DNA from: Macrostomum lignano
Taxonomy: Eukaryota
Assembly (NCBI GenBank): GCA_002269645.1
Contig: NIVC01000903.1
Coordinates: 458,459-522,458, forward strand
Length of the DNA stretch: 64,000 nucleotides
Reading direction: 5' to 3'
Below are positions 4,470 to 63,592 of the stretch, piece by piece (within the stretch, counting starts at the first letter, position 1; every line of letters begins with the position of its first letter). Made by a program: the position numbers and the translations under genes. The notes beneath the pieces were generated by a model. The model saw only the letters and a program-made list of their open reading frames with translations, did no database searches and was not told the DNA's origin.

Positions 4470-5465
4470 ATATACCGACTGCAATACTGAATCTACAGAC
4501 TGCAATACTGAATCTACTGACTGGAATACTGAATCTACCGACTGCAATACTGAATCTACCGACTGGAATACTGAATCTACCGACTGCAATACTGAATCTA
4601 CCGACTGCAATACTGAATCTACCGACTGCAATACTGAATCTACCGACTGCAATACTGAATCTACCAACTGCAATAATAAATCTACTGACCGCAATATTTA
4701 ATCTACCGACTGCAGTACTGAATCTACCAACTGCAATACTGAATCTACCGACTGCAGTACTGAATCTACCAACTGCAATACTGAATCTACTGACTGCAAT
4801 ACTGAATCTACTGAGTGCAATACTGAATCTACTGAGTGCAATACTGAATCTACTGAGTGCAATACTGAATCTACCGAGTGCAATACTCAATCTACTGACT
4901 GCAATACTGAATCTACTGACTGCAATACTGAATCTACTGAGTGCAATACTGAATCTACTGACTGCAATACTGAATCTACTGAGTGCAATACTGAATCTAC
5001 TGAGTGCAATACTGAATCTACCGAGTGCAATACTCAATCTACTGACTGCAATACTGAATCTACTGAGTGCAATACTGAATCTACTGACTGCAATACTGAA
5101 TCTACTGAGTGCAATACTGAATCTACCGACTGCAATACTCAATCTACTGACTGCAATACTGAATCTACTGAGTGCAATACTCAATCTACTGACTGCAATA
5201 CTGAATCTACTGAGTGCAATACTTAATCTACTGACTGCAATACTTAATCTACTGACTGCAATACTCAATCTACTGACTGCAATACTGAATCTACTGAGTG
5301 CAATACTCAATCTACTGACTGCAATATTTAATCTACTGACTGCAATGCTGAATCTACCAACTGCAATACTAAATCTACCGACTGCAATACTGAATCTACT
5401 GACTGCAATATTTAATCTACCATCTGCAATACTGAATCTACCGACTGCAATACTAAATCTACTGA
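4470..5465. repeat. 21-bp minisatellite (actgcaatactgaatctactg-type)
   Basis: Tandem units give the NTESTDC heptapeptide repeat ORFs; lies between the PSMD3 3' end and the LOTUS gene start. Confidence 0.95.
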
Positions 5466-9200: not shown

Positions 9201-9938
9201 TGCGTTGCCATAGCAACTGGGAACAGCTAACGGCCTCAGCCTGGCGATTCGAGTCGAGCAGGTGTAGCAGCAGCAATAGGTGAAGAAACACTTCCGTCTC
9301 TGGGAGCAGGCGGCGGGAGGCCTGAGCGCTCTGGCCTGTTCGGGGAAGGGGGAGGTTTGCAGTTTGAAACTCTGCATAAAGGGTTTTACGTGAATATCAC
9401 TCTGACTAGTGTGACCGTCGACGTGACACTCAAATGTGATAGTCTAATAAACAGTCACCAGTGTGACCGTCGCTGTGATAGTCGAATAAACAGTCACCAG
9501 TGTGACCGTCGATGTGACACTCAAATGTGACAGTCCCTCTTATACAGCTTGTATCCGGAAACTTAAAAAACAACACACAGTCTCACCGGAACCGGAACTG
9601 GCAGCCGACAGGAAGGCCAGGAAGGCGTCTTTGCTGGGCGACACGCCGGGGAAGTAGGCCTGGGCCAGGCGGAGCAGCACGGCCTCGTTCAGGCGACGCC
9701 GGAGCGGCACCAGCGAGCGAACAGTTCGAGTCATAAACCGAGTCTCCTTGGTCTGCACAGCCTTCTCAATGTGCCGCACCTGCTCTTTGATGTCCTCGAG
9801 GGTCAGCGTGTCAGCGTCGGCCCTGGCCGCCTCGTCGTCACCCATTTCAACGTCCTCGTTGGTGGCAGCCGTCTTCGCCGCCGAAGCCGCCTGTTGCTGC
9901 TGCTGCGTCTTTTTTAATTCGCCGTTTGGGGTGCCCAT
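6204..9938 (-). CDS. PSMD3: 26S proteasome non-ATPase regulatory subunit 3 (Rpn3); exons 9938-9587, 9371-8785, 8348-7890, 6350-6204 (514 aa)
   Basis: Motifs [77 protein letters not shown] domain [15 protein letters not shown], and C-terminus [11 protein letters not shown]...[10 protein letters not shown]. All introns are GT..AG with compatible phases (1,0,0). Confidence 0.97.
6420..7815. repeat. 35-bp minisatellite filling PSMD3 intron 3
   Basis: Units gaggagccagagtgatggggctgcagcatcacaca, with shorter variants at the right end. Confidence 0.95.
8530..8705 (+). repeat. Dispersed ~170-bp repeat, copy 1 (PSMD3 intron 2)
   Basis: caggtaacacaggtaaaataggaaagaagtgactccagaca...ttttattgccagggactcagaaacgactttgggg aligns to the reverse complement of 58485-58635. 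Confidence 0.75.
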
Positions 9939-22794: not shown

Positions 22795-23766
22795 TTATTG
22801 CTTGGATTTGGTCTTGGAAGGCGACGACGATGTCGAAAAATTGCCGTTATCGCGTCGACGCCGCTTCTCGGCACTGCCGCCGCCTCCAGAGGACTTCGAT
22901 GACGATGAAGATGAAGATGAAGTATCTGAATTCGATGAAGAGGAGGAGGCTGAGCGAGACCTGGGCGCTGTTGCCGGTTCCCGTTTCCGGTCGTCGCTAC
23001 TCGCAGCCGGCTTAGCGTCGCCGTCCTCCGCCCACAGATTGTACTTTGCCAGATCGCCTTCGTCGTCGTCCTCTTCCTCGTCTGCAGCTTCCTCTTTATC
23101 TTCTTCATCTCGCCGATCGTACGCTCGGTCAGCTTTGCCTCGTCCATCATCGTAATCTCGTTGTTTCGAGCTCGACGAAGCGGTCTCGGCCGGCGCCGAA
23201 GTCAAGCCTCTGTAGCGTTTCTTTTTCCGGCCAAATTCGTCGTATTCGCCGTCCGATCCGGCGTCGTCGTCGATGGCGCGCCGGCGCCGGCGCTGCTCAT
23301 CATCGTCGCGCTCCATGTAGCCGCCGCCTAGGCCGGTGCGCTGGCCCAATTGTTGAGTGTCGCGCGACGTATTGCACACGTTGCAGATATTCCGCCTGGC
23401 CCAGTTGATGTTGCCGCAGCTGCGACAGTTCCAATCGTCCGGGCTAAACAAGCCTTTGCTTTTCTCGGCCATTTGCCGGCCAATCTCGGACGATTGGCGA
23501 GAGCCGCTCCGGCTGCCGCTGCTACTGTTGTGACGGTCATTGTGACGGTCACCGTGACGGTCGCCGTGCCGGTCGCCGTGCCGGTCGCCATACCGGTCGC
23601 CATGCCGGTTGCTATGCCGGTCGCGGTCGCCGCTGCCATCGCCGCCGCCGACGCCACGCGGCTTGCCGCACCGGTTGCAACGGTCCCGCTTAGCGTAGTT
23701 CACGTTGCCGCATTTGGCGTCCGGGCAGCGCCAGTCGTCCCGTTTTGGCACGAATTTGCCGGACAT
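22795..23766 (-). CDS. ZRANB2: Zinc finger Ran-binding domain protein 2 (two RanBP2-type fingers), single coding exon, 323 aa
   Basis: DDWRCPDAKCGNVNYAKRDRCNRCG and DDWNCRSCGNINWARRNICNVCNT, followed by RTGLGGGYMER and SDGEYDEFGRKKKRYRG, which are ZRANB2-specific motifs. Confidence 0.93.
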   Translation of the reverse strand: MSGKFVPKRDDWRCPDAKCGNVNYAKRDRCNRCGKPRGVGGGDGSGDRDRHSNRHGDRYGDRHGDRHGDRHGDRHNDRHNSSSGSRSGSRQSSEIGRQMAEKSKGLFSPDDWNCRSCGNINWARRNICNVCNTSRDTQQLGQRTGLGGGYMERDDDEQRRRRRAIDDDAGSDGEYDEFGRKKKRYRGLTSAPAETASSSSKQRDYDDGRGKADRAYDRRDEEDKEEAADEEEDDDEGDLAKYNLWAEDGDAKPAASSDDRKREPATAPRSRSASSSSSNSDTSSSSSSSSKSSGGGGSAEKRRRRDNGNFSTSSSPSKTKSKQ

Positions 23767-33685: not shown

Positions 33686-36600
33686 TCACTGCGCATCGTG
33701 GGAATAGAGCCTAGACAGAGTCCGCATGATAGATAGCATAGCGCTGCCAGGCACAGTCACTGTGTTCATAGTCTGCGCTAGCATGGCCTGATTTCGCTTA
33801 ACCAAACCGGCCAAATCATTATTAGCCGAAGTTAGCGACTTTTCACCGCCGGCTATTGGCGACCAGAGCTTCACGTCGTAGTCGATGCCGCTGGTTGCCA
33901 GGTAGAGCAGGCTGGGATGCGGCGCCACCCGATTCACCACCCGCTTGTCGGCCAGGCAGGCGTTCAATAGGCGGCCATCGCTGGCGCGCCAGACCAGAAA
34001 GTGTCCGCAATCGCTGCCGGACAGGACATAATTGGAGCCCCAGAATGCCGCCTGTTGGATGCAGGTGCGCGCGTTCCGGTGGCCCTGGAACACCCGGCAC
34101 ACCGGATAGCTTGGATAGTCGGTCGCCGATTCCACTTGCGAGCCGCTGTCGGCCAGGCCGCGGCGATTTGACTGACATGGAGCGGCGCGGGTGGCGGCGG
34201 AGTTAGCAGGGACTGAGGCTACGGAAGCGGCGGAGGCGGCGCCAGCTCCATTGCTGCTTGAATTCGACAGCTCGTGCGGTTCCGACGAAGGCGCCGGCGT
34301 CGGAGGCTCGGAGTGGCGCTGTCGAACTGCGGGCACCTCGTCAGAGGTGTCATCGCTGTCCTCTGGCAGCGGCGGGTTCTGGCCCTCCTGGTCCATCGGC
34401 TGCTCGGACGCTGCAGCGCCGGCCGGATTTCGCTGTCGATTGAGCTGGTAGGCCCGCATCATGAACTGCCCGAGGCGCTCGCTGTAGTCGCCTGAGCCGC
34501 GGGCGACGCCGCCATCGTTGCCGCCACCGTCTCCGCTGCCACTGCCACCACCGCCGCTGCCGCCTCCTTCAGTTGAAGACGACGGCGGCTCGGAGCCCGG
34601 CCCGGTGTCGGACCAGTCGCCGCGGAAGCGAAACACGATTCGACCTGACGAGTCCTCGGCTGGAACGGCGTCGGTTGGCAGCGGGCCGCCGTGCAGCGGA
34701 TCGCAGCCGGCGTTGGGCGCGGCGGTCAGTTGCGACTGAGGCACAGTCTGCTTGATGTCGAACAGGTAGAGACTGCCGCCATTGTAGGAGGCCAGCAGCT
34801 GGGTTGCACTCGGATTAAAGCTTAGGCTGGTAACGCGAACAAGTCGCTTTGAGCTGAGCACTTCAACAGGTTTGGACTGGCTGACCCAGCGACCGTAGCC
34901 GATGCAGCGCCGATCATATTCGCCAATGTAGCCGTCCTTGTCGGCCACGAATAGCCGCTCTCTGGCCAGCGGGTGGACGGCGGCTGCCGTGTAGCCATAG
35001 TAGCTGGGTTGTGAGGTGGGCCGGGGCTGGCGAGCATCGGTCAGAGAGCATCAGTGAGCATCAGTCAGTGAGCATCAGTCAGTAAGCATCAGTCAGTGAG
35101 CATCAGTCAGTGAGCATCAGTGAGCATCAGTCAGTGAGCATCAGTCAGTAAGCATCAGTCAGTAAGCATCAGTCAGTGAGCATCAGTGAGCATCAGTCAG
35201 TGAGCATCAGTCAGTGAGCATCAGTCAGTAAGCATCAGTCAGTGAGCATCAGTCAGTGAGCATCAGTCAGTGAGCATCAGTGAGCATCAGTCAGTGAGCA
35301 TCAGTGAGCATCAGTCAGTGAGCATCAGTCAGTGAGCATCAGTCAGTGAGCATCAGTCAGTGAGCATCAGTCAGTGCGCATCAGTCAGTGAGCATCAGTC
35401 AGTGAGCATCAGTCAGTGAGCATCAGTCAGTGAGCATCAGTCAGTAAGCATCAGTCAGTGAGCATCAGTCAGTGAGCATCAGTCAGTGAGCATCAGTGAG
35501 CATCAGTCAGTGAGCATCAGTGAGCATCAGTCAGTGAGCATCAGTCAGTGAGCATCAGTCAGTGAGCATCAGTGAGCATCAGTCAGTAAGCATCAGTCAG
35601 TGAGCATCAGTGAGCATCAGTCAGTGAGCATCAGTCAGTGAGCATCAGTCAGTGCGCATCAGTCAGTGAGCATCAGTCAGTGAGCATCAGTCAGTGAGCA
35701 TCAGTCAGTGAGCATCAGTGAGCATCAGTCAGTGAGCATCAGTGAGCATCAGTCAGTGCGCATCAGTCAGTGAGCATCAGTTAGTGAGCATCAGTCAGTG
35801 AGCATCAATCAGTGAGCATCAGTGAGCATCAGTGAGCATCAGTGAGCATCAGTCAGTGAGCATCAGTCAGTGAGCATCAGTCAGTGAGCATCAGTGAGCA
35901 TCAGTCAGTAAGCATCAGTCAGTGAGCATCAGTGAGCATCAGTCAGTGAGCATCAGTCAGTGAGCATCAGTCAGTGAGCATCAGTCAGTGAGCATCAGTC
36001 AGTGAGCATCAGTCAGTGAGCATCAGTCAGTGAGCATCAGTCAGTGAGCATCAGTCAGTGAGCATCAGTCAGTGAGCATCAGTCAGTGAGCATCAGTCAG
36101 TGAGCATCAGTCAGTGAGCATCAGTCAGTGAGCATCAGTCAGTGAGCATCAGTCAGTGAGCATCAGTCAGTGAGCATCAGTCAGTGAGCATCAGTCAGTG
36201 AGCATCAGTCAGTGAGCATCAGTCAGTGAGCATCAGTCAGTGAGCATCAGTCAGTGAGCATCAGTGAGCATCAGTCAGTGAGCATCAGTGAGCATCAGTC
36301 AGTGCGCATCAGTCAGTGAGCATCAGTTAGTGAGCATCAGTCAGTGAGCATCAATCAGTGAGCATCAGTGAGCATCAGTGAGCATCAGTGAGCATCAGTC
36401 AGTGAGCATCAGTCAGTGAGCATCAGTCAGTGAGCATCAGTCAGTGAGCATCAGTCAGTGAGCATCAGTCAGTGAGCATCAGTCAGTGAGCATCAGTGAG
36501 CATCAGTCAGTGAGCATCAGTCAGAGAGCATCAGTCAGTGAGCATCAGTGAGCATCAGTCAGTGAGCATCAGTCAGTGAGCATCAGTCAGTGCGCATCAG

Positions 36601-45640: not shown

Positions 45641-45921
45641 ATTGTCTACAAATATAGCTAATACCCCAATGAGGTCTCTGAAGCCATTTTTAGATATTTT
45701 TATACCAAACTATCTCATTCTGTCTCATGTCATATAAAGGCTCTCCAAATATTAGGTACATGTCATTTTTTATGGAAACTACCTGGCATATAACACTAGC
45801 CAGCTAATATTGAATTATGCAAGCAATTAATAAATTTATCTTTATCAAGAAGTCTATCTTAAAACTGTAAAGAATTTCAGTAGCTAAAAATTCAGTTTCA
45901 GTTTTAATGATTATTTTTCAG

Positions 45922-48900
45922 GGAGACCCTGAGTCATTGATCATCACACCGCAGAGCTTTGCAGCACTGCTAGGTGGCAGCTTTCAGGTGAGAAATTGTA
46001 TATTTATTTAGAGAACTATGGATTAATAAACAGAATTTATCTAATAAAAATGGATCCAAAAGTAATTTCTTATTTGCATTCAGTCTAGAGAGACTTTTAT
46101 AAAGCAAAAAATGAACTTAGGTCCTAGTTTGGTCAGGTTATTTTTCTGTACCAACAGCAGTGAATTCAACTTTATCAATTAAATTAAGCTGCTGCTGATC
46201 GACTGCCGCTCGTTCCTTGAGTTCAACACCAGCTGCATACGCGGCGCTATCAATGTGTGCTGTTCGCGGCTTGTTAGGAAACGTCTGCAACAGGGCAAGG
46301 TGAGGAGTAACATGTGTTGTGTAATAATTGGCAAATATATTGTTCAAAATTGATTTATGGAGTCGGCCACTTATGTGATCAACGAGTGTCCAGTGAGACA
46401 TAACGGTAGAAATTAAAATAAAAGCCACAGATTCTATATTATCTATATGTGTCACTCGCAGCATTCTCCCAGCACTCCCCCACAGACACCCCCACAGGCC
46501 ACAGACACTGGGTGCTGCTAATGCTTGAGAGCAGCAAAATCTTTACTCTATGGTCCTAACCCTCAGGGTTTTCGCGCTGCGGGCCAGGCGGCTAGAGTGA
46601 CATTAATCTGAGATAAAGCCTGCATGAGCTGTCATAATCTATGGGCCAAAAGTACGAGCTAGATGCCCGAAATCTGCTTTGAGCTGCTTTGGCATTTTAT
46701 ATTTAGATAATTCTCTTGGTTGAACAGTGGCCTATCCAGGACGTCAAGGTTGAGGCTGATCTCTCCCGTGGGAAAAAATAAATCTTTGTGCTCAATCGTC
46801 AATTGGATATTTTTCATTTTACGAGGGAGAGAGAAGCTTCTCAAGCCAGATTCAATATTTTCTACCGCCGCTACGCGCCACCATTTGATGCGGATAGTGT
46901 TACGCCCGCCTGCTTGTCATAGAGAGGGAGGTTGGGAGGTTTCGGTTGGTAGCAAATAATAAGTGATAAAATCGCATATCCGATCCGATTAAACTAAATC
47001 TCCGCTGAGGTCTCCTACCCTGCCTCATAGTATGCGTCACCCAACATTGCGGTTTGGCGTAGCGCCTCCCCCCACCCTCCAAGATCAAGGCCAATAATGC
47101 CGACCGTGTGCAAAATGACGTCAGCGTGTGTTGCAGTCGTGCGCGTAAATGTTAGCTATAAAATATATTTAATCGTATAGTCCTATGCCTGTTAGCATAA
47201 GCTGTTATATACATGTGTGTGATTCGCTTGTTATAGCAACCTTTAACAGCTACTTGTTATCCAGCGCAGTCTGTGTTCTGACTATTCTGACTCATTCTGC
47301 ATAGAGTGCACGCATTAAGCGAGGCTCTTTCAAGGTCAAAAACGCTTTTTTTAACTAACCCCATTTAACCAAGTAAATTTCTGATAGGAGCATTTTCAAC
47401 TGGGATGATCAATAATTCATTGTTCATTATGAGCATTTCCAACTATGTAATCAATGTTTATTATGAGCATTTTCAACTAGGTGATCAATGCTCATTATGA
47501 GCATTTTCAACTGCGATGATCATTGCTCATTATGAGCATTTTCAACTGCGATGATCATTGCTCATTATGAGCATTTTCAAATTGGGATGGTCATTGCTCA
47601 TTATGTTCATTTTCAACTGGGATGATCATTGCTCATTATGGTGATAAGGGGCTCTTAATTGGAATGACTATTACTAGTATCGGGATTTTTAGCAGGATGG
47701 CCATTGCTCGTATTGGGATTTCTAAAGATGACTACTTCTCATATTGGGATTTTTGATGGGGATTTCGAGATCAAATCTGCTCAGTTCCTCGGAATGCTCA
47801 GCTCATACGCAGATTTTCGTGGAGGCCGGTGGGTTGGGAGATTTTCGCCGGATTAGAGGCATCTGTTGCTATTAGCTAGTCCCGAGGGATGTTCTGTAAA
47901 TTTTTTTCCGGCTTATTTGCTATTCATATCTTCACTTACTTTTCTGTGTGTATAACAAAAATCATCTATCCTTTTATTACTGCATTCTCAAATATTGATT
48001 GCGCAACCAATTTGCATGTTTCTGAGTAACTGATTTTACATGTATAATACTGTTACAGAAGGGCAGGCTGTTTGTGCGTGTATAGAATGTGTCATCGAGC
48101 TTGCTATGTTAGATTAGCTACTTAATAATAGTGAGCTGTAGTGGCTTAGGTAAGCCTGGACAATTGAGAATTGTGTGAGAACTATAAACGATTACTCACA
48201 CTTAAGCTAAACTGCAGAGACCGAACATTCGTGCGTGTGAATAATTTCACGTTTACCTTGCGGGTACGCGGCTGGCTGGCCATACACCCTAGATCCATTG
48301 ATTTCCCCATTACTGTAGAGTATCCATATTGAGTTTATAGTTGTTTTTTGTAGAGTAGTGAATCCCGGATGGCTTGTGTGACACACATGATTGACAAACT
48401 TGTCCGATATGGGTAAGGCGTTAGTTTCTGTTTATTTACTCTGCGTAAATTAATGAAGTATGATGGTTAAATATGGTATTTGCGTTCTATAGGGGCCGTA
48501 GTCTAGTGTTTTAGTGCCTAGTGCCCAGGCTCGATTCCAGGTGTAGTTGCATTAATTTTGGGCTAAATCGGAATCTCAGCTTGGGTCTGCTTGTGCAATT
48601 AACGCCATTGAGGGCCAACCCCCACAAGGCACAGTGAAGTGTACATGCCTAACCATAAATAAAAGTTAGGGCCGCTGTACAGATCCTGTGTGAGTGTGTG
48701 CCTGTGCGGATGACTGCTCAGGGGAGTCGACGGAATGGGCAATAATGCCTCTCGCAGGTATGTATGTGACAGTGACAATGTCGATTATTAAAGTGCACCA
48801 GGGTGCATGTAGCTCCCTGTCTTTAATAAAGAAATAACGTCTTATACTACTGAAATATAAGTAGAAATAAGAGATAGATTCCGTATTATGAAATGAAATT

Positions 48901-51900
48901 TATGAAGAACGCTGGCTCATACAGGGAAGTAAAGAAATTTCAGTGCAATGTGTTTTTGTTTACTTCACTTAACATCTAAAAATAGTAGTTTGTAAAGTGT
49001 CAGATGGAGCTTACTTCGCGTTAGTCTGCTTGCCCGCGACAACTGAAAATAAGAATACGCGAAATCGATAGCCCCTATAGCAGGCAAGGTGCGTGTTTAC
49101 CTTACCTTATTGTACCTGCGCTGTGCACCTGACTGACTGACTCATCGGCCCGCACTGCTATAGCCTCGATAGCCTGCTTATTGCTAGAAATACTTCAACT
49201 TAGATTTCCTGTTTGCGTCTCCTGCTGCCAAATATAGATAGAATTATTGTTTTAAGTAATCTTAAGTAAAATCCCGAGGGCAACGCGTGTTGATTAACCG
49301 TTTTTTAATTATTATGGTGCCTGTGATTATCAAAACTGTTAATTAGATTTAACCATCTTTATTTTAATAGAAATTTCTCGAATACAGAGTGTTCGGCCCG
49401 TTAATAATTTGTTGTCTCAAGGCTAGTTCAAGTTTCCAATTGAATTTTATTTAGTAAAAGAAGCGACCATGAAATCTGGGAAGTCTACGAAAAAATGCCA
49501 AAATTGCTAGAATTATGCTTTCGCTCTACTATAAGTAGCGTTTATTTTTAAGCGATTGATTAGTAAGATATTTAAATTCAGTTTTATTGACTGCATTTAG
49601 CTGCGCAATCCAATGCGTGACCTGTCGCGCCCTCATTTTTTACCCAATTCACTTCAAGCAGCTTCTCCTCCCTCGGGCCGGACAATTACGTAATTGAGGG
49701 GAGTGGGCGAGCGTGTGTTTTTCTTTCTTACTTCTCTCCTCTCCTCACTCACTCCGCGCATCATCGTCACTTTGTGGCGGTGACTAATGCTTAATGCTGG
49801 GCTTGGGCCGCGGTTTTGCCTCGATTGACCTCCCTTTTCTTCTCTTTTTTTTCTAACCCGCAAATCTTCCTGTTTCCCTTGGGAGACTTCTGGTAAGCAT
49901 AAGTCCTGGCATATCGAGTCACGGTGCGTATGCGCCAACTATATGGGGCATATATAATGTTATTTCTCTCAATTTTTATGTTTTATAGGCTCTCCAATCC
50001 CTATTCCCTTGAGCGGTTTCTTAAATTTTTGTCTACCTGGCTTTAGCCCCCCTCCCCCGAGCTCTTGCGTTGCATAATAATAATCCCACTAACGGATGCT
50101 GGGCTTTGGGATTTGAGAATCCGGTGCTCAGGCAGTTGAATTGAACAGTTTAAAAAACTGTTTATTGGTACGCGTTGCCACTGCACGGCCGTTGTCAGCG
50201 CTTGTATAATAATAATAATAATATTAATAGTTGTGTGTAAAGAGTGAGTCAACGTATTTATTGCTTGGGCGTATGGCATTGGGAAATGGGAAAGGAAAGA
50301 AAATGAAAGGGATGAGGGAGAGACATGGGAGGAAGAGAGAGAGCGAGGGGGGTGTTCTGGGTTGTGACCTTAGCTGGCAGTGCTTCAGCTGGGGAATTGC
50401 TCTGCATTATAGTCACTTTGGTGCTTAAAGTGGCTGCTGATTCGTGTCACCAATTCTAATTGAATTGAACCGGGAGCGTTGGCTAAACAGAAGACTGTAC
50501 GATCTTTTAGATTGCCTGATTCCTAGTCTGGGAGGATGAGTGACCTTGTGTAGGCTTACTACGAGGGTCACTCAGAAAGTTCTTAGCTTGAACACGAAAA
50601 CAGCAACAAATGAACTAAAAAACGACTACAAGTGCTCAAAATACTCTCCACCGGCATTGATACAGGCTTGCATCTTGTGAAACCAGCTGTCGAAGCACTG
50701 CCGCCAATCCTCATCCCGGAGCTCCTCGATGATGTTTTTAAACTCATTCACAGCTTCTTCCGGTGAAGAAAAGACCTGGCCCTTCAGAATCTCCTTGCAC
50801 TTCGGAAACAGAAAAAAGTCGCACGGTGCCAGGTCTGGACTGTAAGCAGGGTGAGTCATCAGCTGGACCCCACAGTCAGCCAGAAACTCCAGAGTTGGAG
50901 CCGCCGTGTGCGCGCTGGCGTTGTCGTGGTGCAGAAGCACCCCGCGCATTCCGCACCTTGGGCGCCTCTGGCTCACAGCAGAAAAGACCTTGGGCAGGCA
51001 AACCGTTGTGTACCAGTCAGCGGTGACTGTCTGGCGATCTTTAAGTGAAACGGAAGCCACATACCCAGTGCGCATCAAGAAACAGGCCACCATCTGCTTG
51101 CCGACACTCCGGCTGCGTCGAAACTTTGTGGGGCTGTCCTCGTCTCCAAAGGTCCACATGGCTGACTGGCGCTTGCTTTCGGGGTCGTATTGATAAATCC
51201 AGGTCTCATCGCCCGTGAGGATGTCCCAGATACGCCGGCTGGTCCCGGATTCGAATTTCTGCAGCATGAATCGGCACCAAGCCACCCTGGTGTCCTTCTG
51301 CACTTCCGACAGCTGATGGGGGATCCACCGGGAAGCCAGCTTCCGCACTCCAAGGTGTTCGTGCATAATGGCGTGCACACTCCCCGATCCAATACCGATC
51401 TCCTGTTGGATCTGCTGGTAGGTCACTCGCCGGTCAGCGGCAATCATGCTGGACACAGCGCAGATATTTTCTGGAGTCACTGCGTCACAGGGTCTCCCGG
51501 ATCGATGTTCATCTTCGAGGCTTTCTCGACCTCGGCGAAACTCAGCGAACCAGTTTTTGACGGTTGCGTATGAAGGACATACATGGGTGAAAACGTTCTG
51601 TAAAGTTTGATACGATTCGGCCGGCGACTTGCCTTGCTTGAAGTGCAGGTACATCATTGCTCTGAAGTCGCGATTTTCCAGCTTCATTGTTTAATTGAAG
51701 AACTCAGGGGGTGAACTGACTTTAACTCGCTGCAGTGGACTCAAAAGTGGCTGCTTCTGTTTGAAATTTTTGCTGCGATACTTTTAAAAGTTGGTCTTTA
51801 CCATAGACAAATTTCATGCTTCTACGTCTCGTGGATCCTACTCAGGCTAAAGACTTTCTGAGTGACCCTCGTAAGAATAACCGTTAGGAATGACGATTGA

Positions 51901-54900
51901 CCTGCTAGGGGATTTAGGGAGGGCGAGTGACTTTCACACACTACGAGTACCAGTTAGAAAGGCCGAGTGACCTAGACCTACTAGGAGTCCCAGTTAGAGG
52001 CCGAATGACCTAGACCCACTGAGAGTACCAGTTAGAAAGGCCGAGTGACCTAGACCTACTAGGAGTCCCAGTTAGAGGCCGAATGACCTAGACCCACTGA
52101 GAGTGCCATCTAGACAGGCCGAGTGACCTAGCCCCACTGAGAGTGCCATTTAGAGAGGCCGAGTGACCTAGACCTACTGAGAGTGCCATCTAGAGAGGCC
52201 GAGTGACCTAGACCCACTGAGAGTAACAATTAGAGAGGCCGAGTGACCTAGGCCCACTGAGAGTAACAATTAGAGAGGCCGAGTGACCTAGACCCACTGA
52301 GAGTAACAATTAGAGAGGCCGAGTGACCTAGACCCACTGAGAGTGCCAATTAGAGAGGCCGAGTGACCTAGACCCACTGAGAGTAACAATTAAAGAGGCC
52401 GAGTGACCTAGAGCCACTTAGAGTGCCAGTTAGAGGCCGAGTGACCCAGACCCACTGAGAGTACTGAGAGTGCCAATTAGAGAGGCCGAATGACATAGAC
52501 CCACTGAGAGTGCCAATTAGAGAGGCCGAGTGATCTAGACCCACTGAGAGTAACAATTAGAGAGGCCGAATGACCTAGACCCACTGAGAGTGCCAATTAG
52601 AGAGGCCAAGTGACCTAGACCCACTGAGAGTGCCAATTAGAGAGGCCGAGTGACCTAGACCCACTGAGAGTGCCAATTAGAGAGGCCGAATGACCTAGAC
52701 ACACTGAGAGTGCCAATTAGAGAGGCCGAGTGACCTAGACCCACTGAGAGTGGCAATTAGAGAGGCCGAGTGACCTAGACCCACTGAGAGTAACAATTAG
52801 AGAGGCCGAGTGACCTAGACCCACTGAGAGTAACAATTAGAGAGGCCGAATGACCTAGAGCCACTTAGAGTGCCAGTATTGAATACTCGCTAAACTTTGA
52901 AAATATTCCGCAGCTGTCAATCGACGATCTGATCGCCTCGGGCAGTCCTGGCGGCGCTCGAACGCCTCCGTCGCCGAAGTCGCCGCCAGCTGGGGAAGCC
53001 TCGGCATCGGGAGGCGCCGAGAGTTCTGGCGTGCAGGCCGCCAAGGGCCCCGAGCCCGACCTGGTTGTTGTGTACGATCAGTGCTCAGATCGGCCGCCAA
53101 TTGAAGCGGGCGATTCCAGCTTCCTAATGCTGCTGATGCAGCGCCTGGTGCGACAGTACAAAGCTGTCCGCCTGCTGCAGGGTGAGGCTGCTGATGACTC
53201 ACTGCCCCCTCTCCCTCTCTCTCAAGCCGGCTTCTTTTGAAGTTATGATCTGTAGTTGAGTGGATGGACGATCTAGATAATTTCAATTTTCCTCCCAACA
53301 ACTAACTATAGGATGAATTGAACTTTTTTGTAACCATTTACAATCCCCTTCTGAGTCACTTCGAATGGGGGGAAGTGGATCCTGTTTCTGGACTCGGAAA
53401 TCGGTTCTGAATAGAAGTGGCCGCGCCTGGTCCTAGGAATTTATCTATCCGCATGTGTGCGCGCAGTCATAGCGTTCAGATACAGTCCTAGATTTTAGCT
53501 ATGACTAACAATCTTTGTTTAAGTGCTTTAAAGCGTTTAATCCAAGCGCTCGTGTCTGTCCCTGTCTTTCTAATGCTGTCTTGGGTTTGGCGGTCCACCC
53601 CGGCAGTTACTAGCTGAAGTAGCTAATTACTCATCTTATTGCTTAGTCACAATTTAGCCGCTTTATTTCGGCACCCACCCGCCAACTATATAGACTTTGC
53701 TAGTTTTTGTTGTTTGTACGACATCTTGAATAGCTTTGGAGGTATCACCCGAGTTGTCTTTGTCTTATCATATTTTCATGCCCAAGTTGCTAGTTTGTTC
53801 CCAGTTGTCTCATTGGGTGAGATTTTGAGACTTCTGTGTCTCACGGTTGAGATTTTGGGACCTCTGTGTCTCATTGGGTGAGATTTTGAGACTTCTGTGT
53901 CTCACGGTTGAGATTTTGGGACCTCTGTGTCTCATTGGGTGAGATTTTAAGACTTCTGTGTCTCACGGGTGAGATTTTGGGACCTCTGTGTCTCATTGGG
54001 TGAGATTTTGAGACTTCTGTGTCTCACGGGTGAGATTTTGGGACCTCTGTGTCTCATTGGGTGAGATTTTAAGACTTCTGTGTCTCACGGGTGAGATTTT
54101 GGGACCTCTGTGTCTCATTGGGTGAGATTTTGAGACTTCTGTGTCTCACGGGTGAGATTTTGGGACCTCTGTGTCTCATTGGGTGAGATTTTGGGACTTT
54201 TGTGTCTCATTAGGTGAGATCTTGGGACCTCTGTGTCTCATTGGGTGAGATTTTGAGACTTCTGTGTCTCACGGGTGAGATTTTGGGACCTCTGTGTCTC
54301 ATTGGGTGAGATTTTGAGACTTCTGTGTCTCACGGGTGAGATTTTGGGACCTCTGTGTCTCATTGGGTGAGATTTTGAGACTTCTGTGTCTCACGGGTGA
54401 GATTTTGGGACCTCTGTGTCTCATTGGGTGAGATTTTGAGACTTCTGTGTCTCACGGTTGAGATTTTGGGACCTCTGTGTCTCATTGGGTGAGATTTTGA
54501 GACTTCTGTGTCTCACGGGTGAGATTTTGGGACCTCTGTGTCTCATTGGGTGAGATTTTGAGACTTCTGTGTCTCACGGGTGAGATTTTAGGACTGCTGT
54601 GTCTTACAGATTGCGTCTATTTAAAGTATTTTTGCATGCTTTTTAGGTTGCTTGAAAATAAGAAATTGGTTGGGTAGCAGGTGCTTAGCTGCTATTGACG
54701 GCAACTCCTTGTTATTCCTTTGAAGCAGCAGACTCGCGCCGCAGCTTTCCTCCCGAGTTGGGAGTCAGTTGTCTCTGTTGATTAAAAAGTAGATTATAAA
54801 AATGCAAAAAAAAATTGGATATGGGGAGCCTATTTAGACCGGTTATTAATCCACTGGTTGATAATCTGGCAGTTCGCATGAGTCACCAAATTGAAATATG

Positions 54901-57900
54901 GCCATAGCCAGACTGTATACAATACGCAGGTCCTTCCTGTTTCATATATCGGCCATTTTATTTATGTTTGTTATACTACGGCTTAATCAAGGACAGCTAA
55001 GTAGTATTCTGGTTTCTTAGAAAATTTTGAGAGCTCATTGTTTTGTGATGGAATAAACGAATAAATGAAAATTTCCTATCTCCGTAGTGTATTTTCCTGC
55101 GCAAACCCAGTCCTGCTCAAGTCGTCCTTGGTCTTGTGGGTTAATGTTACAACAACTGAGTCATTGCGCTTGTTTAAGGAGGCCGCACTATTAGCTAATA
55201 ATATTTATCAAGTGCTGCTCTGCGGCTGACGAATTGTCAACGCTTTGTAGTGAGCTGGCACGTGCGCGCAGTCATATGATGTCAACACATCCAGCGCACT
55301 CTCAGCCCGTCCAATGTATTTTTTTGTTTAAAAAAAGAAACTCAACGCGCTTAGTCAGATTCTCTGTTCAACTGGCGACAGGGGCCGCTCGGGGGGGGGG
55401 GGGTAGCCCCGCTGCGTTGGCCTTAGCAACGGGAGTGGGCTTGGTTGGCAACGCTACGGAGATTCCCCCCTCTCAACCCCACCCCCACGTCCCCTTATTG
55501 TCGCCCGCCCACTTAGTCAGCATTTCAGCCTCTCAGTTCTAATTAAATACTGCCGCTGGGTACATTGCTTGTGCGTGTTTCTCTTTTTCTAAAACCTATT
55601 CGGGAGAGAGGGCGGCGTTGCACATTGCTATAGTGATAGTCGCTCGCTGATTTGCTAAGGCTGTCCACTGAGGGAGAGAGAGCAGAGTGCGCCCGCCTCA
55701 CACCCCTTGCATTTATCTTTTCTATAACTTATTCGACTCTCGGGATAGGAGGGTGCGAGTTATATCAACACGCGGCCATATTGCTCTGTCACCCTGTCCT
55801 CCTGTCCGCCCAGTCATCATTTTTTATTAATCTTCTACTGTGATCGATTTGCCCGTCACGATTTGCAATAAGCATGCTTGAAAATCGTGGCGGTACCGGC
55901 GGCGGCGTTAACGCCATCGTCACAGATCAGCCCCCGGCCGCCTCTGTCGTAGTCAATAGGCCCCGGCCTCCCTGTCGATTGTCCCTATCGACGCCAATGG
56001 CCGCTGCTTTAGCCTCTCCGTTGAGCCCAATCTCGGCTAATCCATGCGTTACCATGGCAACAACGCCGACAACAAATTTGGCGCGAAAGCGTCGCACCTG
56101 TATGGGTAAGAATCGATTCAAAAAGGATTAGCTAGGGCCCCTAATTGCCGTAGAATCCTCATTAGAAGCTGGGGTGTGGCTTGCATTTTGTCACTCTGCG
56201 CTGCTCCCATCGCTCAGCCCCGCTCCAATCTGCTTTGCTTTGGTTTTGACTATTTTCTGCCGCTTTTTTGCTATCTTAGCAAAATCTTGTAACCATTTTG
56301 ATAGCTCAAACAGAGATTTTATAACTGTCCCGTGCGTGTCTAGCTATTTCCTATATCAGGCTTAGCTGCTTCCTATATCAGATAATCAGGCTTAGCTACT
56401 TCTATATCAGGCTTTGCTGTTTCACATATCAGTCTTAGCTATTTCACATATCAGGCTTAGCTATTTCCTATATCAGGCTGTGCTACTTCCTATATCAGGT
56501 TGAGCTACTTCCTATATCAGGCTTAGCTATTTCCTATATCAGGCTTAGCTATTTCCTATATCAGGCTGTGCTACTTCCTATATCAGGCTTAGCTATTTCC
56601 TATATCAGGCTTAGCTATTTCCTATATCAGGCTGTGCTACTTCCTATATCAGGCTTAGCTATTTCCTATATCAGGCTGAGCTACTTCCTATATCAGGCTG
56701 AGCTACTTACTATATCAGGCTTAGCTATTTCCTATATCAGGCTGAGCTACTTCCTATATCAGGTTGAGCTACTTCCTATATCAGGCTTAGCTATTTCCTA
56801 TATCAGGCTTAGCTATTTCCTATATCAGGCTGTGCTACTTCCTATATCAGGCTTAGCTATTTCCTATATCAGGCTGAGCTACTTCCTATATCAGGCTGAG
56901 CTACTTCCTATATCAGGCTGAGCTACTTACTATATCAGGCTGAGCTACTTACTATATCAGGCTTAGCTATTTCCTATATCAGGCTGAGCTACTTCCTATA
57001 TCAGGTTGAGCTACTTCCTATATCAGGCTTAGCTATTTCCTATATCAGGCTTAGCTATTTCCTATATCAGGCTGTGCTACTTCCTATATCAGGCTTAGCT
57101 ATTTCCTATATCAGGCTTAGCTATTTCCTATATCAGGCTGTGCTACTTCCTATATCAGGCTTAGCTATTTCCTATATCAGGCTGAGCTACTTCCTATATC
57201 AGGCTGAGCTACTTACTATATCAGGCTTAGCTATTTCCTATATCAGGCTGAGCTACTTCCTATATCAGGTTGAGCTACTTCCTATATCAGGCTTAGCTAT
57301 TTCCTATATCAGGCTTAGCTATTTCCTATATCAGGCTGTGCTACTTCCTATATCAGGCTTAGCTATTTCCTATATCAGGCTGAGCTACTTCCTATATCAG
57401 GCTGAGCTACTTCCTATATCAGGCTGAGCTACTTACTATATCAGGCTGAGCTACTTACTATATCAGGCTTAGCTATTTCCTATATCAGGCTGAGCTACTT
57501 CCTATATCAGGTTGAGCTACTTCCTATATCAGGCTTAGCTATTTCCTATATCAGGCTTAGCTATTTCCTATATCAGGCTGTGCTACTTCCTATATCAGGC
57601 TTAGCTATTTCCTATATCAGGCTTAGCTATTTCCTATATCAGGCTGAGCTACTTCCTATATCAGGCTGAGCTACTTCCTATATCAGGCTGAGCTACTTCC
57701 TATATCAGGCTTAGCTATTTCCTATATCAGGTTTAGCTACTTCTCAGAATCATGTCAACACTGTTACCAGCCTTTCTACTGTGAACTGGGTTTTTATTAT
57801 GAAAAATCTTCTCACCTCTAGGCGGCTTCCTCAGCTTCTCGGCCGGCTATCCGCAGCACTGCGAGTCCAAGACCAGCCAGGACCCGGAGGCTAGCGAGAA

Positions 57901-59889
57901 ACCCGCAGCTGAGCCTTCCGCTGTCAGCCAGGGCCCGACTCGGGTGCTCAACTTTCTGTACGTCGGTTCGCAAGCCGACGCTCTAGACGAGGAGGTAATC
58001 AGACGGCACGGCATCACGCACATCCTGAACGTCAGCTCCTCCTGTCCGCAGTCTCGGCACGTGTCGCCTGATAATTTTCTACGCATCTCCGTTAACGATG
58101 GTTATGTTGACAGGCTGTTGCCGCATTTTCAACAGGCGTTTCAGTTTCTTGGTGAGCAATTCTTTTCATTAACATTTTTAATGGAGTTAACGATACCTAC
58201 TAGCTCAGCGACTCTCGCGCCACGAACCCTGGTTCGATTCCTTGTGCGGCCACATCAGACGGTTAGAAAATCAGGGCCGCTGTACACATGACTCAAAAAA
58301 CTGTAATGTGACAGAGAGGCGACTGACTCTCTAGATAAACTCTAGATATAGTTTTCATAAATGCAAAATGCGATTCTTATTCATAAGTGACGCAGATGGC
58401 TTTAGACGCAACTCAGTGATTCCACAGCGACTCGGGCATGCCTCAGATCCGACTCTGCGGCCCCCCGAGTCATTATAGAAGCGCCCCAGAGTCGTTTCAG
58501 AGTCGCAGGCAATAAAACATCTCAAATTTATCTTTGACGACTACTTGGCAACTTTTACCGTGGCATCTCGTCGTTTTAGAGTTGTCTGGAGACACTTCTT
58601 TCCTAGTTTACCTGGGTTACCTGTAACGCCTTTGAAACGTTAAATGAGTGTGGCCGCGCACGCAATCGAACCCACGTACCACTGAGCTACTCCGCCCCAT
58701 CCCATAGAAAGGCTTGGCTTTCTTAGGCTCGTCTCAGTTTGCATTCGCCATTCCATCGGTCCTTCAATTCAGAAAATGTCCGCGAAACGTCCGGCCGCTG
58801 TCTCGTCCACTGCCTGGCCGGCATCTCGCGGTCGCCCACGCTGTCGATCGCCTATATTATGAAGCACAAGAAGATGTCTCATGAGGACGCCTACAAGTAG
58901 GAATTTGTTAATTATTATTATTTCAATTGTGTAATATTAGTTTCTGTAGGGAAATGTTTCATTTACTTTGCTATCCACATTTCCGCAGATTTGTCAAAGA
59001 GAAGCGAACCAACATATCGCCAAACTTTAACTTCCTGGGCCAGCTGCTTGAATTCGAAAAGCAATTGAAACGTTCGGAGAGCTTCTCCGAAGCCGCCTCG
59101 CCATCCGGCGGCGGTGGCGGCAGCGGCGGAGACGGCAGCGACTGTTGGGAGGCGAAACGACAGCGCACGACCGTTGCGAGCAGCCGCAGCCAGCCAGCGG
59201 GCTTCCTCCGGCCGCCGCCGCCTCCGCCGCTGCCAGCCTCGGCACAGAGTCCCACCACGGCGCTATCGCGGCTGTCCTTCACGCCGTGCGCCTCGGCGGC
59301 CGCCCTTCAACATCACAACCACCTGCCGGACTTTCCCGGCACCAGCCTGGAGCAGGTGGCCGTCACGCCCTGCCGGTCCGCCGCCGCTGCCACCTGCTCC
59401 GCTCCACCTACTCCGCCACCTCCGCTCACGTCGGCTCTGCCTCCGCCGCCGCCGCCTCCGGCGCCAGTTCGCACCACCAGCCGTCGAGTCAGCGGCCAAC
59501 AGGCATCGGCAGGCAGCGGATCTTCGGCAGCCTCGCCGGCAGCGTCTTCGAATAGCGGGCAAGCCAGCCGACCTCACAGCGTTGTGCTGTCGGCTGCCTC
59601 TGCCGCCGCCGCTGTTCGCAAGAGCCAATCGGAGAATCACCTGCTCAGCGAGGAGGACGATCGAAGCAGCGGCAGCAGCAGCAGTTTGGCGGCCACTTAT
59701 GCAGCGGCGGCTGCGGCGGCGGCTGCTGCGGCGGCGGCTGCAGCCGTGGCGGACGGCGGCCGGTCCCGCTCAACGGAGAACCTGGCAGCTGACGCGGCCT
59801 GCGCGGCTAGCGGCGGCAGCATGAAGTCGCTGTCTAGTAGCGCTTCTAATGGGTCCCACGGCAGTCAGGAGATTCTCACCTATTCATAG
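45922..59889 (+). CDS. DUSP16: Dual-specificity MAPK phosphatase, DUSP8/16 type; exons 45922-45987, 46189-46299, 52914-53181, 57822-58151, 58773-58896, 58989-59889 (599 codons; initiator not located)
   Basis: Rhodanese domain LLLIDCRSFLEFNTSCIRGAINVCCSRLVRKRLQQGK...VVVYDQ...LLQGGFLSF. Catalytic domain GPTRVLNFLYVGSQ, VHCLAGISRS, FVKEKRTNISPNFNFLGQLL. C-terminus GSQEILTYS resembles GSMEIIEVS. Phases 0,0,1,1,2 are all compatible. DUSP8 versus DUSP16 cannot be resolved. Confidence 0.92.
47116..47123. promoter_or_regulatory. Perfect CRE/ATF palindrome TGACGTCA in a DUSP intron
   Basis: Sequence match only. Confidence 0.35.
47385..47640. repeat. ~35-bp minisatellite (ttatgagcattttcaactgggatgatcattgctca)
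   Basis: About 7 degenerate units. Confidence 0.85.
48493..48545 (+). mobile_element. Short tRNA-like Pol III head (degenerate SINE)
   Basis: ggggccgtagtctagtg ... ggctcgattcc (A-box-like and B-box-like). Confidence 0.35.
50562..51871 (-). mobile_element. Full-length mariner transposon, 1310 bp, ~30-bp TIRs, TA TSD, antisense in DUSP intron
   Basis: ta|cgagggtcactcagaaagttcttagcttga ... tcaggctaaagactttctgagtgaccctcg|ta, with 3 mismatches between TIRs. Confidence 0.97.
50626..51687 (-). CDS. Mariner DD34D transposase, intact, 353 aa
   Basis: Two HTH regions, WIPHQL, TGDETW, HHDNASAH, HPAYSPDLAPCDFFLF; uninterrupted ORF. Confidence 0.97.
   Translation of the reverse strand: MKLENRDFRAMMYLHFKQGKSPAESYQTLQNVFTHVCPSYATVKNWFAEFRRGRESLEDEHRSGRPCDAVTPENICAVSSMIAADRRVTYQQIQQEIGIGSGSVHAIMHEHLGVRKLASRWIPHQLSEVQKDTRVAWCRFMLQKFESGTSRRIWDILTGDETWIYQYDPESKRQSAMWTFGDEDSPTKFRRSRSVGKQMVACFLMRTGYVASVSLKDRQTVTADWYTTVCLPKVFSAVSQRRPRCGMRGVLLHHDNASAHTAAPTLEFLADCGVQLMTHPAYSPDLAPCDFFLFPKCKEILKGQVFSSPEEAVNEFKNIIEELRDEDWRQCFDSWFHKMQACINAGGEYFEHL
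51945..52872. repeat. 40-bp minisatellite (tagagaggccgagtgacctagacccactgagagtgccaat)
   Basis: Tandem array running from near the mariner end to ~40 nt before the DUSP exon at 52914. Confidence 0.93.
53815..54600. repeat. Alternating 30/31-bp minisatellite (61-bp dimer)
   Basis: gtgagattttgagacttctgtgtctcacgg alternates with gtgagattttgggacctctgtgtctcattgg; each unit contains a tgaga...tctca inverted pair. Confidence 0.93.
55874..56105 (+). CDS. Candidate alternative first coding exon of the DUSP gene
   Basis: GC-rich ATG-initiated frame of 77 codons + 1 nt ending ATG G|gtaaga. This is phase 1 and matches the phase-1 acceptor at 57822. Confidence 0.6.
56340..57745. repeat. 22-bp minisatellite (agctatttcctatatcaggctt) with a 506-bp higher-order duplication
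   Basis: Identical 117-aa artefact ORFs at 56568 and 57074 (offset 506 = 23 x 22). Confidence 0.95.
58200..58253 (+). mobile_element. Compact Pol III A/B-box element, copy 1
   Basis: tagctcag...ggttcgattcc...gcggccac. Confidence 0.5.
58485..58635 (-). repeat. Dispersed ~170-bp repeat, copy 2 (DUSP intron)
   Basis: Reverse complement aligns with 8530-8705. Confidence 0.75.
58650..58690 (-). mobile_element. Compact Pol III A/B-box element, copy 2 (inverted)
   Basis: Minus strand gtagctcagtggtacgtgggttcgattgcgtgcgcggccac. Confidence 0.5.
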
Positions 59890-61285: not shown

Positions 61286-62639
61286 TCAATTTTGCACATC
61301 GAGTTGAATGCTTGTTGTTCATTCTTAACTTCAATATGCTCCTGAGGCCAGAAACTCGGATGAAGAAAAGGCAGTTTTAGCTGCCTCATTTAATTTTAAT
61401 GACACTGCGCAGACAAACTACTGAAAAGTAATAGACTCAACTTTTTACGAGTTTAGTTGCGAGTGATATATCCAGTTATTCTAGATTATACTGCCGAAGT
61501 AGTAATGCGGAATCTGCATTGTACGAGCTAGTAAGCGTAATCCTAAAAATGTAGCGGTACGGGGAGCTATAAATCGGTTTGTTTTAATAAAAGAGAGCTC
61601 TTTGAATTGCCATAGTTGATAAAATTGTTAATAAGTGAACAAAAAGTGAATAGATTTTTAAACACAACTTTATTAAAATTGTTGTAAAACTCCGTGTGCC
61701 TGCGTTGTGCCCCTTTGACACAGCAGCAAATCTTGTTTTGCTATATACATATATATAAAGCATGCAGACTCAGGGCCTTAGATTGCTTAACTAAATAGAA
61801 TACAGAAGATTTTCAGTAACTCCCCCCCCCTTTTGCCTGTCCCGTATCGCTATTTAAAGTAATGTATTCGTCAATAGCTAGTAGTAAGGATTTTCATCCA
61901 AGCCGAAAAAATCTCTGTGATTCTCTGCTGCTGCTTTGCGTCATTATTCTATTCTGTTAGATAGAATTTGCACCTGCACTAAGCCATGCTCGCATCACTG
62001 TCCCGGCTACTGTTTCCAGTGTTATTCTTGTCATACATTTATATATATATCGATTTCACTGTACCAGTTGGATTGTTTGATTACTTCGCTGTCTCTATCC
62101 ATCTTTCATGCCATTCTGTCAGGTATTATTACTGTCATACTTTATTTGCCTTCTCTCGTACGCCCGCCCAGCCCTCTGTCATACTCTGTCAGAATTTAAT
62201 AAATCATTCTCTGTAATCGCTGTGCTATTTAAATTACCTATCGCCTGTTTATATCTAAGCAGAGAGTGGACTCTGCCGCTATAATAACTATATTATTTCT
62301 ATTAGTCATTCTACCGGTAGATGTAACCGGTATTTTGCCACTTGCGCTCATTGGCGTCATTAAGTTTAATAAAGCATAGCAGCGGCAGCACAGTACTGCA
62401 TAAAATATGTAGTTTAAGGTACGTCTATCTAGTAACTAAATATATTGCATAGAAATTTACTCCCCCGCTGCTCAAACTTTTTAGCACTTTTAAGCACAGT
62501 GAATAATAAATATTGACTTGGGGTTTTTTGCTAACAAAAATGTTTTTTTTGGATTAACAATTGTTTATCTAAGGGACAATTGCGCTTAACAAATGCATGT
62601 ACACACATTGTACCTTGAATCGCCCCTCAACAGTAAATT

Positions 62640-63592
62640 AAAATCGCTCATCAACAACAGTACGTCAGAATCGCTCATAAACAAGAGTACATCAGAATCG
62701 CTCATCAACAACAGTACATCAGAATCGCTCATAAACAAGAGTACATCAGAATCGCTCATCAACAACAGTACATCAGAATCGCTCATCAACAACAGTACAT
62801 CAGAATCGCTCATCAACAACAGTACATCAGAATCGCTCATAAACAAGAGTACATCAGAATCGCTCATCAACAACAGTACATCAGAATCGCTCATAAACAA
62901 GAGTACATCAGAATCGCTCATCAACAACAGTACATCAGAATCGCTCATCAACAACAGTACATCAGAATCGCTCATCAACAACAGTACATCAGAATCGCTC
63001 ATCAACAACAGTACATCAGAATCGCTCATCAACAACAGTACATCAGAATCGCTCATAAACAAGAGTACATCAGAATCGCTCATAAACAAGAGTACATCAG
63101 AATCGCCATCAAGAACAACACATCAGAATCGCTCATCAGCAGCACATCAGAATCGCTCATCAACAGCACATTAGAATCGCCGTCAACAACAGTACATCAG
63201 AATCGCTCATAAACAAGAGTACATCAGAATCGCCCATCAACAACAGCACATTAGAATCGCCATCAAGAACAACACATCAGAATCGCTCATCAGCAGCACA
63301 TCAGAATCGCTCATCAGCAGCACATCAGAATCGCTCATCAGCAGCACATCAGAATCGCTCATCAGCAGCACATTAGAATCGCTCATCAACAGCACATCAG
63401 AATCGCCCCTCAACAACAGCACATTAGAATCGCCGTCAACAACAGTACATCAGAATCGCTCATCAACAACAGTACATCAGAATCGCTCATAAACAAGAGT
63501 ACATCAGAATTGCCCATCAACAACAGCATATTAGAATCGCCATCAAGAACAACACATCAGAATCGTCCATCAGCAGCACATCAGAATCGCTA
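62640..63592. repeat. 27-bp minisatellite (catcagaatcgctcatcaacaacagta) with shorter variants
   Basis: Produces the NNSTSESLI and MSDSDVLL artefact ORFs. Confidence 0.95.

Follow-up and report, generated by a model that had tools for sequence, protein, structure and literature searches.

A conserved alternative first exon and a candidate exchange of docking modules in a DUSP8/16-type phosphatase gene of Macrostomum lignano

The specificity of mitogen-activated protein kinase (MAPK) phosphatases (MKPs) is normally credited to the rhodanese/kinase-interaction motif (KIM) domain. A phosphatase gene of the flatworm Macrostomum lignano raises the question of whether this domain can be exchanged for a linear peptide through the choice of a first exon. 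The gene lies in a 64,000-nt stretch of contig NIVC01000903.1 (assembly GCA_002269645.1, positions 458,459 to 522,458 of the forward strand), here called the window, in whose numbering coordinates are given unless another locus is named. It codes for a MAP-kinase phosphatase of the DUSP8/DUSP16/VHP-1 type, and its 5´ part holds two alternative modules: upstream exons that encode the rhodanese domain, and an alternative first exon, exon b, inside an intron. A preliminary description made from the sequence alone had placed an ATG-initiated, phase-1 exon at 55874-56105 and joined it in frame to the exon at 57822, for a product of 528 aa; the sequence and our own joining of the exons confirmed this structure.

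Exon b and its gene

Exon b (+ strand) comprises 232 nt, or 77 codons plus 1 nt, and runs from an ATG at 55874-55876 to a phase-1 donor (...TGTATGG|gtaaga). It sits within the 4.64-kb intron 53182-57821, where it is the sole ATG-initiated open reading frame (ORF) to reach a GTRAG donor in phase 1. Joined by script across the acceptor at 57822 (ctctag|GCGGCTTC) to the three body exons of this + strand gene (57822-58151, 58773-58896 and 58989-59889), it reads open to a TAG. In the 528-aa product, Pfam finds a complete DSPc domain (profile positions 1-133 of 133, E = 5e-39) and no Rhodanese domain, which bears out the claim of a full catalytic domain without the rhodanese domain. Since the start of the exon at 57822 (GGFLSFSAGYPQHCES) still belongs to the rhodanese profile, the short isoform retains an orphan end of the rhodanese fold. 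We also considered an internal cassette exon; this was ruled out by an in-frame TGA at 55841-55843, 33 nt upstream of the ATG, and by the sole AG acceptor candidate before the ATG, which opens a frame that stops within 26 codons.

The canonical long isoform begins with a coding exon at 45907-45987 (+ strand), modelled in UniRef A0A1I8J5B3 as MIIFQ GDPESLIITPQSFAALLGGSFQ, and its true start may lie further upstream, because an acceptor is present at 45921|45922. Two further + strand exons, located by tblastn with DUSP8/16 homologues, encode the rhodanese fold: the N-terminal half at 46189-46299, also detected as Pfam Rhodanese, includes the KIM region (LLLIDCRSFLEFNTSCIRGAINVCCSRLVRKRLQQGK), with the KIM itself reading SRLVRKRLQQGK, and the C-terminal half at 52914-53181 (LSIDD...VVVYDQCSD...VRLLQ|G) ends in a phase-1 donor, CAG G|gtgagg. 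Over the whole long isoform, Pfam reports Rhodanese at residues 15-160 (E = 5e-8) plus DSPc. The body shared by both isoforms, also on the + strand, consists of exon 3 (57822-58151; tblastn and Pfam), with the end of the rhodanese fold, a linker and the start of the catalytic domain; exon 4 (58773-58896; tblastn and exon join), with the active site VHCLAGISRS, an HCxxGxxR signature; and the last exon (58989-59889), with the end of the catalytic domain, a long Ala/Pro/Ser-rich tail and the stop TAG at 59887-59889.

A single database model touches this gene: A0A1I8J5B3 (P0121; 153 aa, 'Rhodanese domain-containing protein' of Macrostomum lignano) is 100% identical to the upstream exons of the window and ends past the rhodanese domain, and no database protein extends over the catalytic exons, for which the best match has 71% identity. 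The gene is therefore split or truncated in the existing annotation. The closest proteins overall, at 53-71% identity, come from M. lignano and from the assembled sequencing runs SRR28338165 and SRR30276804. Outside flatworms, the best named matches are DUSP8, DUSP16 and VHP-1 proteins (47-58% identity over the catalytic region), and the subgroup assignment follows these named matches rather than a formal phylogeny.

Conservation of exon b and of its upstream region

We compared the window with two paralogous M. lignano loci, L001 (NIVC01001575, gene Mlig006006g1, product P0002) and L002 (with L003, gene Mlig009817g1, product P0004), in which homologous exons were located by tblastn and a motif scan. 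Each locus contains an unannotated exon b homologue, at L001:7531-7834 (MPSSP...SAKRNRPSRLQLGF...SISPLSPISPN...ARPRKLRSI|G gtgagt) and at L002:6944-7160 (MRSQQ...VAKRARPGRLQLEF...GSPLSPISANPSILGARKRRK|G gtaagc). All three copies have the start Met, an A at -3 and the phase-1 donor in common, and the position of the downstream acceptor (..ag|GC) corresponds to one and the same Gly codon (57822 of the window, L001:10179, L002:10182). In the three-way alignment the invariant islands, in which the codon changes are synonymous only, are P-x-R-L-x-L, SPLSPIS-x-N and RK-x-R.

The codons indicate what has been conserved. Between the window and L002, 29 residues of exon b are identical, 18 of them encoded by different codons; in the SPLSPISANP stretch all 10 residues are identical, with six synonymous codon differences. 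Nucleotide similarity between these two exons, as seen by blastn, is confined to the 30 nt that encode this stretch. The catalytic domains of the paralogues are themselves only ~60-70% identical. Identical residues in different codons, together with nucleotide similarity limited to 30 nt, argue for selection on the protein and not on the DNA. From these comparisons we take exon b to be genuinely coding and to have been kept by selection since the paralogues diverged; very probably it functions as a coding first exon.

Elements upstream of exon b are conserved as well. A putative internal promoter or enhancer spans 54879-55521 (+ strand), with TGAGTCA at 54879 and 55157, TTAGTCAG at 55351, GATTCCCC at 55461-55468 and TTAGTCAGC at 55513-55521; the two TGAGTCA and two TTAGTCA sites that the preliminary description had counted within 1 kb upstream are those at 54879 and 55157 and those at 55351 and 55513. 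In L001 and L002, exon b is preceded by the same elements, on the same strand and at similar distances. Measured from the ATG, the + strand T[GT]AGTCAG(C) sites have the positions -361 and -523 (window), -392 and -223 (L001), and -352 and -464 (L002), and GATTCCCC is found exactly once on the + strand of each locus, at -413, -298 and -323, respectively. Raw 7-mer enrichment was swamped by minisatellites and became informative once limited to 7-mers present in all three loci; among those in all three 1-kb upstream regions, TTAGTCA ranked first, with 6 occurrences against 0.48 expected. By sequence, this is a conserved cis-module at the place expected for an exon b promoter, and it fits an internal, stress-responsive promoter. 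In appearance, the T[GT]AGTCAG(C) elements are sites for bZIP factors, of AP-1 or NF-E2/CNC-Maf type, and GATTCCCC looks like a Rel/kappaB-like site.

Two other features of this part of the intron were noted. Four more AP-1-like heptamers (TGAGTCA twice and TTAGTCA twice) form a second cluster at 53195-53649, just past the rhodanese exon and upstream of exon b by 2.2-2.7 kb. Thirteen consecutive G residues (55390-55402) fall in a GC-rich block, 55380-55510, which also contains GATTCCCC.

The docking-motif reading and its alternatives

In the exon b peptide, the segment RPRPPCRLSL was confirmed at the position that had been given for it, as were the S/T-P sites and the basic patch. RPRPPCRLSL (residues 29-38; 55958-55987, + strand) resembles a docking motif (D-motif), and within it P33-x-R35-L36-x-L38 is invariant across the three paralogues. 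The island SPLSPISANP (56015-56044, + strand) contains a P-x-S-P phospho-acceptor site of MAPK type, and the basic patch ARKRR (residues 70-74; 56081-56095, + strand), in which R71, K72 and R74 are invariant, is found at the exon's end. The peptide has four S/T-P sites (T40, S48, S51 and T64). The P-L-S-P site, invariant in the three loci, lies ~12 residues downstream of the D-motif-like segment in the window; MAPK partners are usually laid out in this way, with a PxSP phospho-acceptor after the docking motif. The N-terminus encoded by exon b is predicted to be disordered: in an AlphaFold2 model of the short isoform, residues 1-73 have a pLDDT (predicted local distance difference test) score < 50, against > 90 for the catalytic core.

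We assigned the motifs to D-motif classes, using class patterns of the Eukaryotic Linear Motif (ELM) resource; a published study (PMC4670726) confirmed how the classes are defined, as well as the loose consensus and a JIP1 core of 7 residues. The pattern of the JNK-specific JIP1 class, [RK]-P-x-x-L-x-[LIVMF], has a short linker ('2-spacing') and a basic residue directly before the Pro, and a six-frame translation of the 64-kb window contains only 15 matches to it. The D-motif of JIP1 on JNK1 belongs to this RPxxLxL class, which is matched exactly by exon b of L001 (RPSRLQL) and of L002 (RPGRLQL), as well as by all five members of another N-terminal type of this gene family, described below (RPERLTF, RPCGLKF). 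The window segment RPRPPCRLSL fits the generic pattern and the loose consensus, with basic residues, a short linker, a hydrophobic-x-hydrophobic pair and a predicted-disordered context. Its spacer had been described as one residue longer than in the JIP1 type; the alignment instead revealed an Arg-to-Pro substitution at the basic position and no insertion. The docking-motif reading is therefore well supported for the exon family; the window copy may have undergone a shift in its affinity or in the MAPK that it prefers. The earlier proposal of a MAPK-docking peptide is supported in part, in that RP..L.L is one of three invariant islands and exactly of JIP1 class in two paralogues, with a generic match only in the window.

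These features would be accounted for by a mechanism in which a promoter within the intron gives rise to a transcript that begins with exon b and is spliced from 56105 to 57822, swapping the rhodanese/KIM domain for a 77-residue disordered peptide. In a first step, the bZIP-type elements (AP-1 or CNC/Maf-like T[GT]AGTCAGC) and GATTCCCC would drive the short isoform, probably on stress signalling. Next, by way of the linear motif, the catalytic domain would be held at a stress MAPK's docking groove, with the JIP1-class motif of the paralogues pointing to JNK as the partner. Lastly, the nearby PLSP site would let the kinase phosphorylate the phosphatase, and the steps together would form a feedback loop. 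The sequences show the anatomy of the exon, its in-frame join, purifying selection on it, the conserved elements upstream, the predicted disorder and the motif class of the paralogues; from these we infer that an internal promoter is active, that 56105 is spliced to 57822, that the peptide binds a MAPK and selects among MAPKs, and that stress induces the isoform. On balance we favor the reading as a whole, namely two alternative 5´ modules with exon b as a stress-driven MAPK-docking swap with feedback, and judge it rather more probable than its alternatives taken together. For MAPK docking as the mode of action of exon b, the sequences tip the scale slightly in favor, and we hold JNK as the partner of the window copy to be less probable than that.

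Several observations weigh against this reading. The generic D-motif pattern is common, with 395 matches in the six-frame translation of the window, and by itself constitutes weak evidence. The window core R-P-P-C-R-L-S-L matches this pattern alone and fails the JIP1, NFAT4, DCC and MEF2A class patterns; the residue directly before the core Pro, basic in the JIP1 class, is Pro here, and with its basic residue set one position farther out from Pro-x-x-L-x-L the copy falls outside the strict class. JNK admits only two short-linker D-motif classes (PMC4670726), which makes JNK binding of the window copy doubtful. Window-wide, T[GT]AGTCA is only moderately enriched (30 observed against 19 expected), with 9 of the 30 sites in 53195-55519, and the identities given above for the upstream factors are guesses. 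Finally, the exon b peptide, searched as an alignment of the window and L002 copies against 5.8 billion proteins, gave no matches at E <= 10, and the 77-aa peptide gave none among 1.84 billion cluster representatives; no protein in these collections contains the peptide, and so none of the three loci has a transcript there that supports exon b. As evidence this negative is weak: coverage of M. lignano transcripts in the collections appears poor, the M. lignano matches come without the label of Logan, a sequencing-run assembly, and the real long isoform is itself present only as a genome-annotation fragment. The proposal that one gene encodes two phosphatases with different targeting modules is supported in part, by exon anatomy, conservation and upstream elements, and by the combination of rhodanese exons with D-motif first exons in L001.

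An alternative that accepts exon b as a genuine conserved first exon denies that its peptide docks MAPKs: the disordered region might serve localisation (RKRR as a nuclear-localisation signal), phospho-regulated stability (through the SP sites) or another partner, with RP..L.L incidental. The failure of the window copy in every specific D-motif class, the frequency of the generic pattern and the fact that the best-conserved island is SPLSPISAN, not the D-motif, would all fit this explanation. We nevertheless regard it as unlikely, in view of the invariance of P-x-R-L-x-L in three paralogues, the exact JIP1 class of two of these copies and, at an independent place, of the other N-terminal type, the MAPKs as the only known substrates of the protein, and the succession of D-motif and PxSP, which is the standard layout of a MAPK partner (PMC4670726).

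Alternatively, exon b might work in the paralogues and be decaying in the window copy, so that only the long rhodanese isoform is made from this locus. The Arg-to-Pro change at the basic position would be expected under decay, as would the 1.4-kb minisatellite (56342-57743) that fills most of the downstream intron and the lack, in the window, of the N-terminal extension present in L001 and L002. However, nothing is broken in the ORF, in its start codon (A at -3) or in the GTAAGA donor, the peptide retains SPLSPISANP as well as ARKRR, the T[GT]AGTCAG and GATTCCCC elements upstream are likewise intact, Arg is kept at -2 and -4 from the Pro, and minisatellites are also found in other introns of the same gene. 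We therefore consider decay improbable. That exon b is a chance ORF beside a chance GT, or a conserved non-coding or regulatory element that merely looks coding, would explain why no annotated or assembled protein contains it, but is scarcely credible in the face of three paralogous copies with a common start, phase and junction codon, 18 of 29 identical residues reached by different codons and nucleotide similarity restricted to a single 30-nt stretch, a pattern of conserved protein and not conserved DNA.

A second rhodanese-less N-terminus and known systems

The docking-swap reading gains a further element from the paralogues, which have a second N-terminus without a rhodanese domain, supported by transcripts, that the preliminary description had missed. 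Five proteins (P0001-P0005; type c) all begin MVLCRK[FN]RP..L.F, with the JIP1-class motif at residues 8-14. In L001 (10001-10178) and L002 (10001-10181), exon 3 is extended at its 5´ end to encode this N-terminus, within whose ORF the exon-3 acceptor is located. The N-terminus is present in transcripts assembled from two sequencing runs (L004-L006). The 5´ untranslated region (UTR) of L004 is colinear with L002:9790-9925 and contains an in-frame upstream stop, and because of these two properties the MVLCRK form is taken to be transcribed from its own start inside the intron. In the window, we found neither an MVLCRK-type extension nor its conserved 5´ UTR, only low-complexity GC-rich matches, and the 22-bp minisatellite occupies the position that corresponds to the extension. 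The window peptide was at one stage considered a homologue of the MVLCRK N-terminus of P0002 and P0004; this was dropped once the true exon b homologue was found upstream in L001 and L002.

The loci therefore differ in their sets of modules. L001 has rhodanese exons (1464-1577 and 4918-5142), exon b and the MVLCRK extension; the window has rhodanese exons and exon b and lacks the extension; L002 has exon b and the extension, and no rhodanese exons were found in the 6.9 kb upstream of its exon b (L002:1-6943), on a contig that continues for 11 kb further upstream, outside the search. In exon 3 of L002 (10182-10230), the rhodanese remnant GGF..F..YP..CE has degenerated to GSGLHEFHSLAG / GSGLHEFHSLAGKQQS. 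This suggests that L002 (Mlig009817g1) now makes only rhodanese-less forms and, since its rhodanese exons were not found and the remnant has decayed, that such forms can work alone. A broader view, which we offer tentatively and do not regard as probable, is that Macrostomum DUSP8/16-type genes are three-way modular, with the rhodanese/KIM module, exon b and the MVLCRKxRPxxLxF extension of exon 3 each under its own promoter; promoter choice would set which MAPK is switched off, and drift of the linear motifs (JIP1 class in the paralogues, off-class in the window) would retune specificity.

The introns of the window gene contain several repeats. The intron between exon b and exon 3 (56106-57821, + strand) consists mostly of the 22-bp minisatellite (56342-57743, 63 copies), and large minisatellites in and around the gene's introns lie at 47417-47640, 51914-52875, 53806-54604, 56342-57743 and 62628-63591, with periods of 35, 40, 61, 22 and 27 bp; copy numbers reach 63. 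An intact 353-aa ORF for a mariner/Mos1-type transposase (50626-51687, - strand; Pfam HTH_48, HTH_32 and partial Transposase_1/DDE_3) lies inside the gene's first long intron, 46300-52913. Intron 58152-58772 contains a 24-nt inverted repeat (58231-58254 and 58649-58672; 88% complementary, 394 nt apart) with arms similar to a tRNA's T-arm/acceptor end (GGTTCGATTCC...); ARAGORN found no tRNA in the tRNA-like fragments of this intron, and the repeat (58231-58672) may represent the ends of a tRNA-derived short interspersed nuclear element (SINE) or of a miniature inverted-repeat transposable element (MITE). The neighboring genes are all on the minus strand: an OST-HTH/LOTUS-domain protein (2663-4408), the proteasome lid subunit PSMD3/Rpn3 (7872-9938), an LMBR1-like membrane protein (18854-20741), a ZRANB2-like RanBP2-type zinc-finger protein (22795-23766) and a WD40 protein (33686-34948).

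Drosophila Puckered is a DUSP10-type JNK phosphatase induced by JNK/AP-1 feedback. The logic proposed here would be similar, with an MKP expressed from AP-1-type sites and feeding back on JNK, and for M. lignano the feedback is suggested by the conserved heptamers alone. A literature search on Puckered and rhodanese returned nothing specific and left the earlier statement that Puckered lacks a rhodanese domain unconfirmed; searches on Macrostomum with JNK and on vhp-1 isoforms likewise found nothing specific. The M. lignano protein resembles DUSP8, DUSP16 (MKP-7) and C. elegans VHP-1 in its Rhodanese plus DSPc long isoform, the KIM SRLVRKRLQQGK, the VHCLAGISRS signature and the long low-complexity C-terminal tail, and differs in the exon b peptide, for which no database protein searched has a counterpart. 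Rhodanese-less DUSP8/16 entries from nematodes, carp, electric eel and catfish (isoform X2) were set aside as counterparts; they look like truncated or partial models and have no docking-type N-terminus.

The preliminary description had not recognised such a modular switch as described, and parts of it are in fact known from two systems. Chicken DUSP8 produces a rhodanese-less short isoform, X2, from an alternative promoter in intron 3 (PMC12536144). This case matches in family, in the internal promoter (proposed for M. lignano), in the loss of rhodanese/KIM and in the retention of the phosphatase domain, but X2 is an N-terminal truncation with no replacement docking element reported (PMC12536144), whereas M. 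lignano has a dedicated coding first exon with a conserved peptide. MKP5/DUSP10 likewise has a JIP1-class linear motif on an MKP: its disordered N-terminus carries the motif (core residues 18-24), validated for JNK binding, and its rhodanese domain binds p38 (Zeke et al., 2015; PMC4670726). There, motif and rhodanese domain are on one polypeptide, whereas in M. lignano they are proposed to be mutually exclusive through alternative first exons. Because the M. lignano gene belongs to another MKP subgroup, its motif probably arose independently of that in MKP5. What appears to be new is the mutually exclusive swap of a rhodanese/KIM domain for a linear motif by way of a dedicated conserved first exon, and the presence of up to three targeting modules in one gene.

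The existing annotation is wrong or incomplete at each of the three loci, and exon b is missing from it throughout. If the docking-swap reading is true, these genes would constitute a natural experiment in which domain-based and motif-based docking are interchangeable on one catalytic body and promoter choice re-aims the phosphatase. They would also provide a concrete case of docking motifs being born, duplicated and drifting among paralogues, in a transgenic, regenerating model suited to the study of stress-MAPK signalling.

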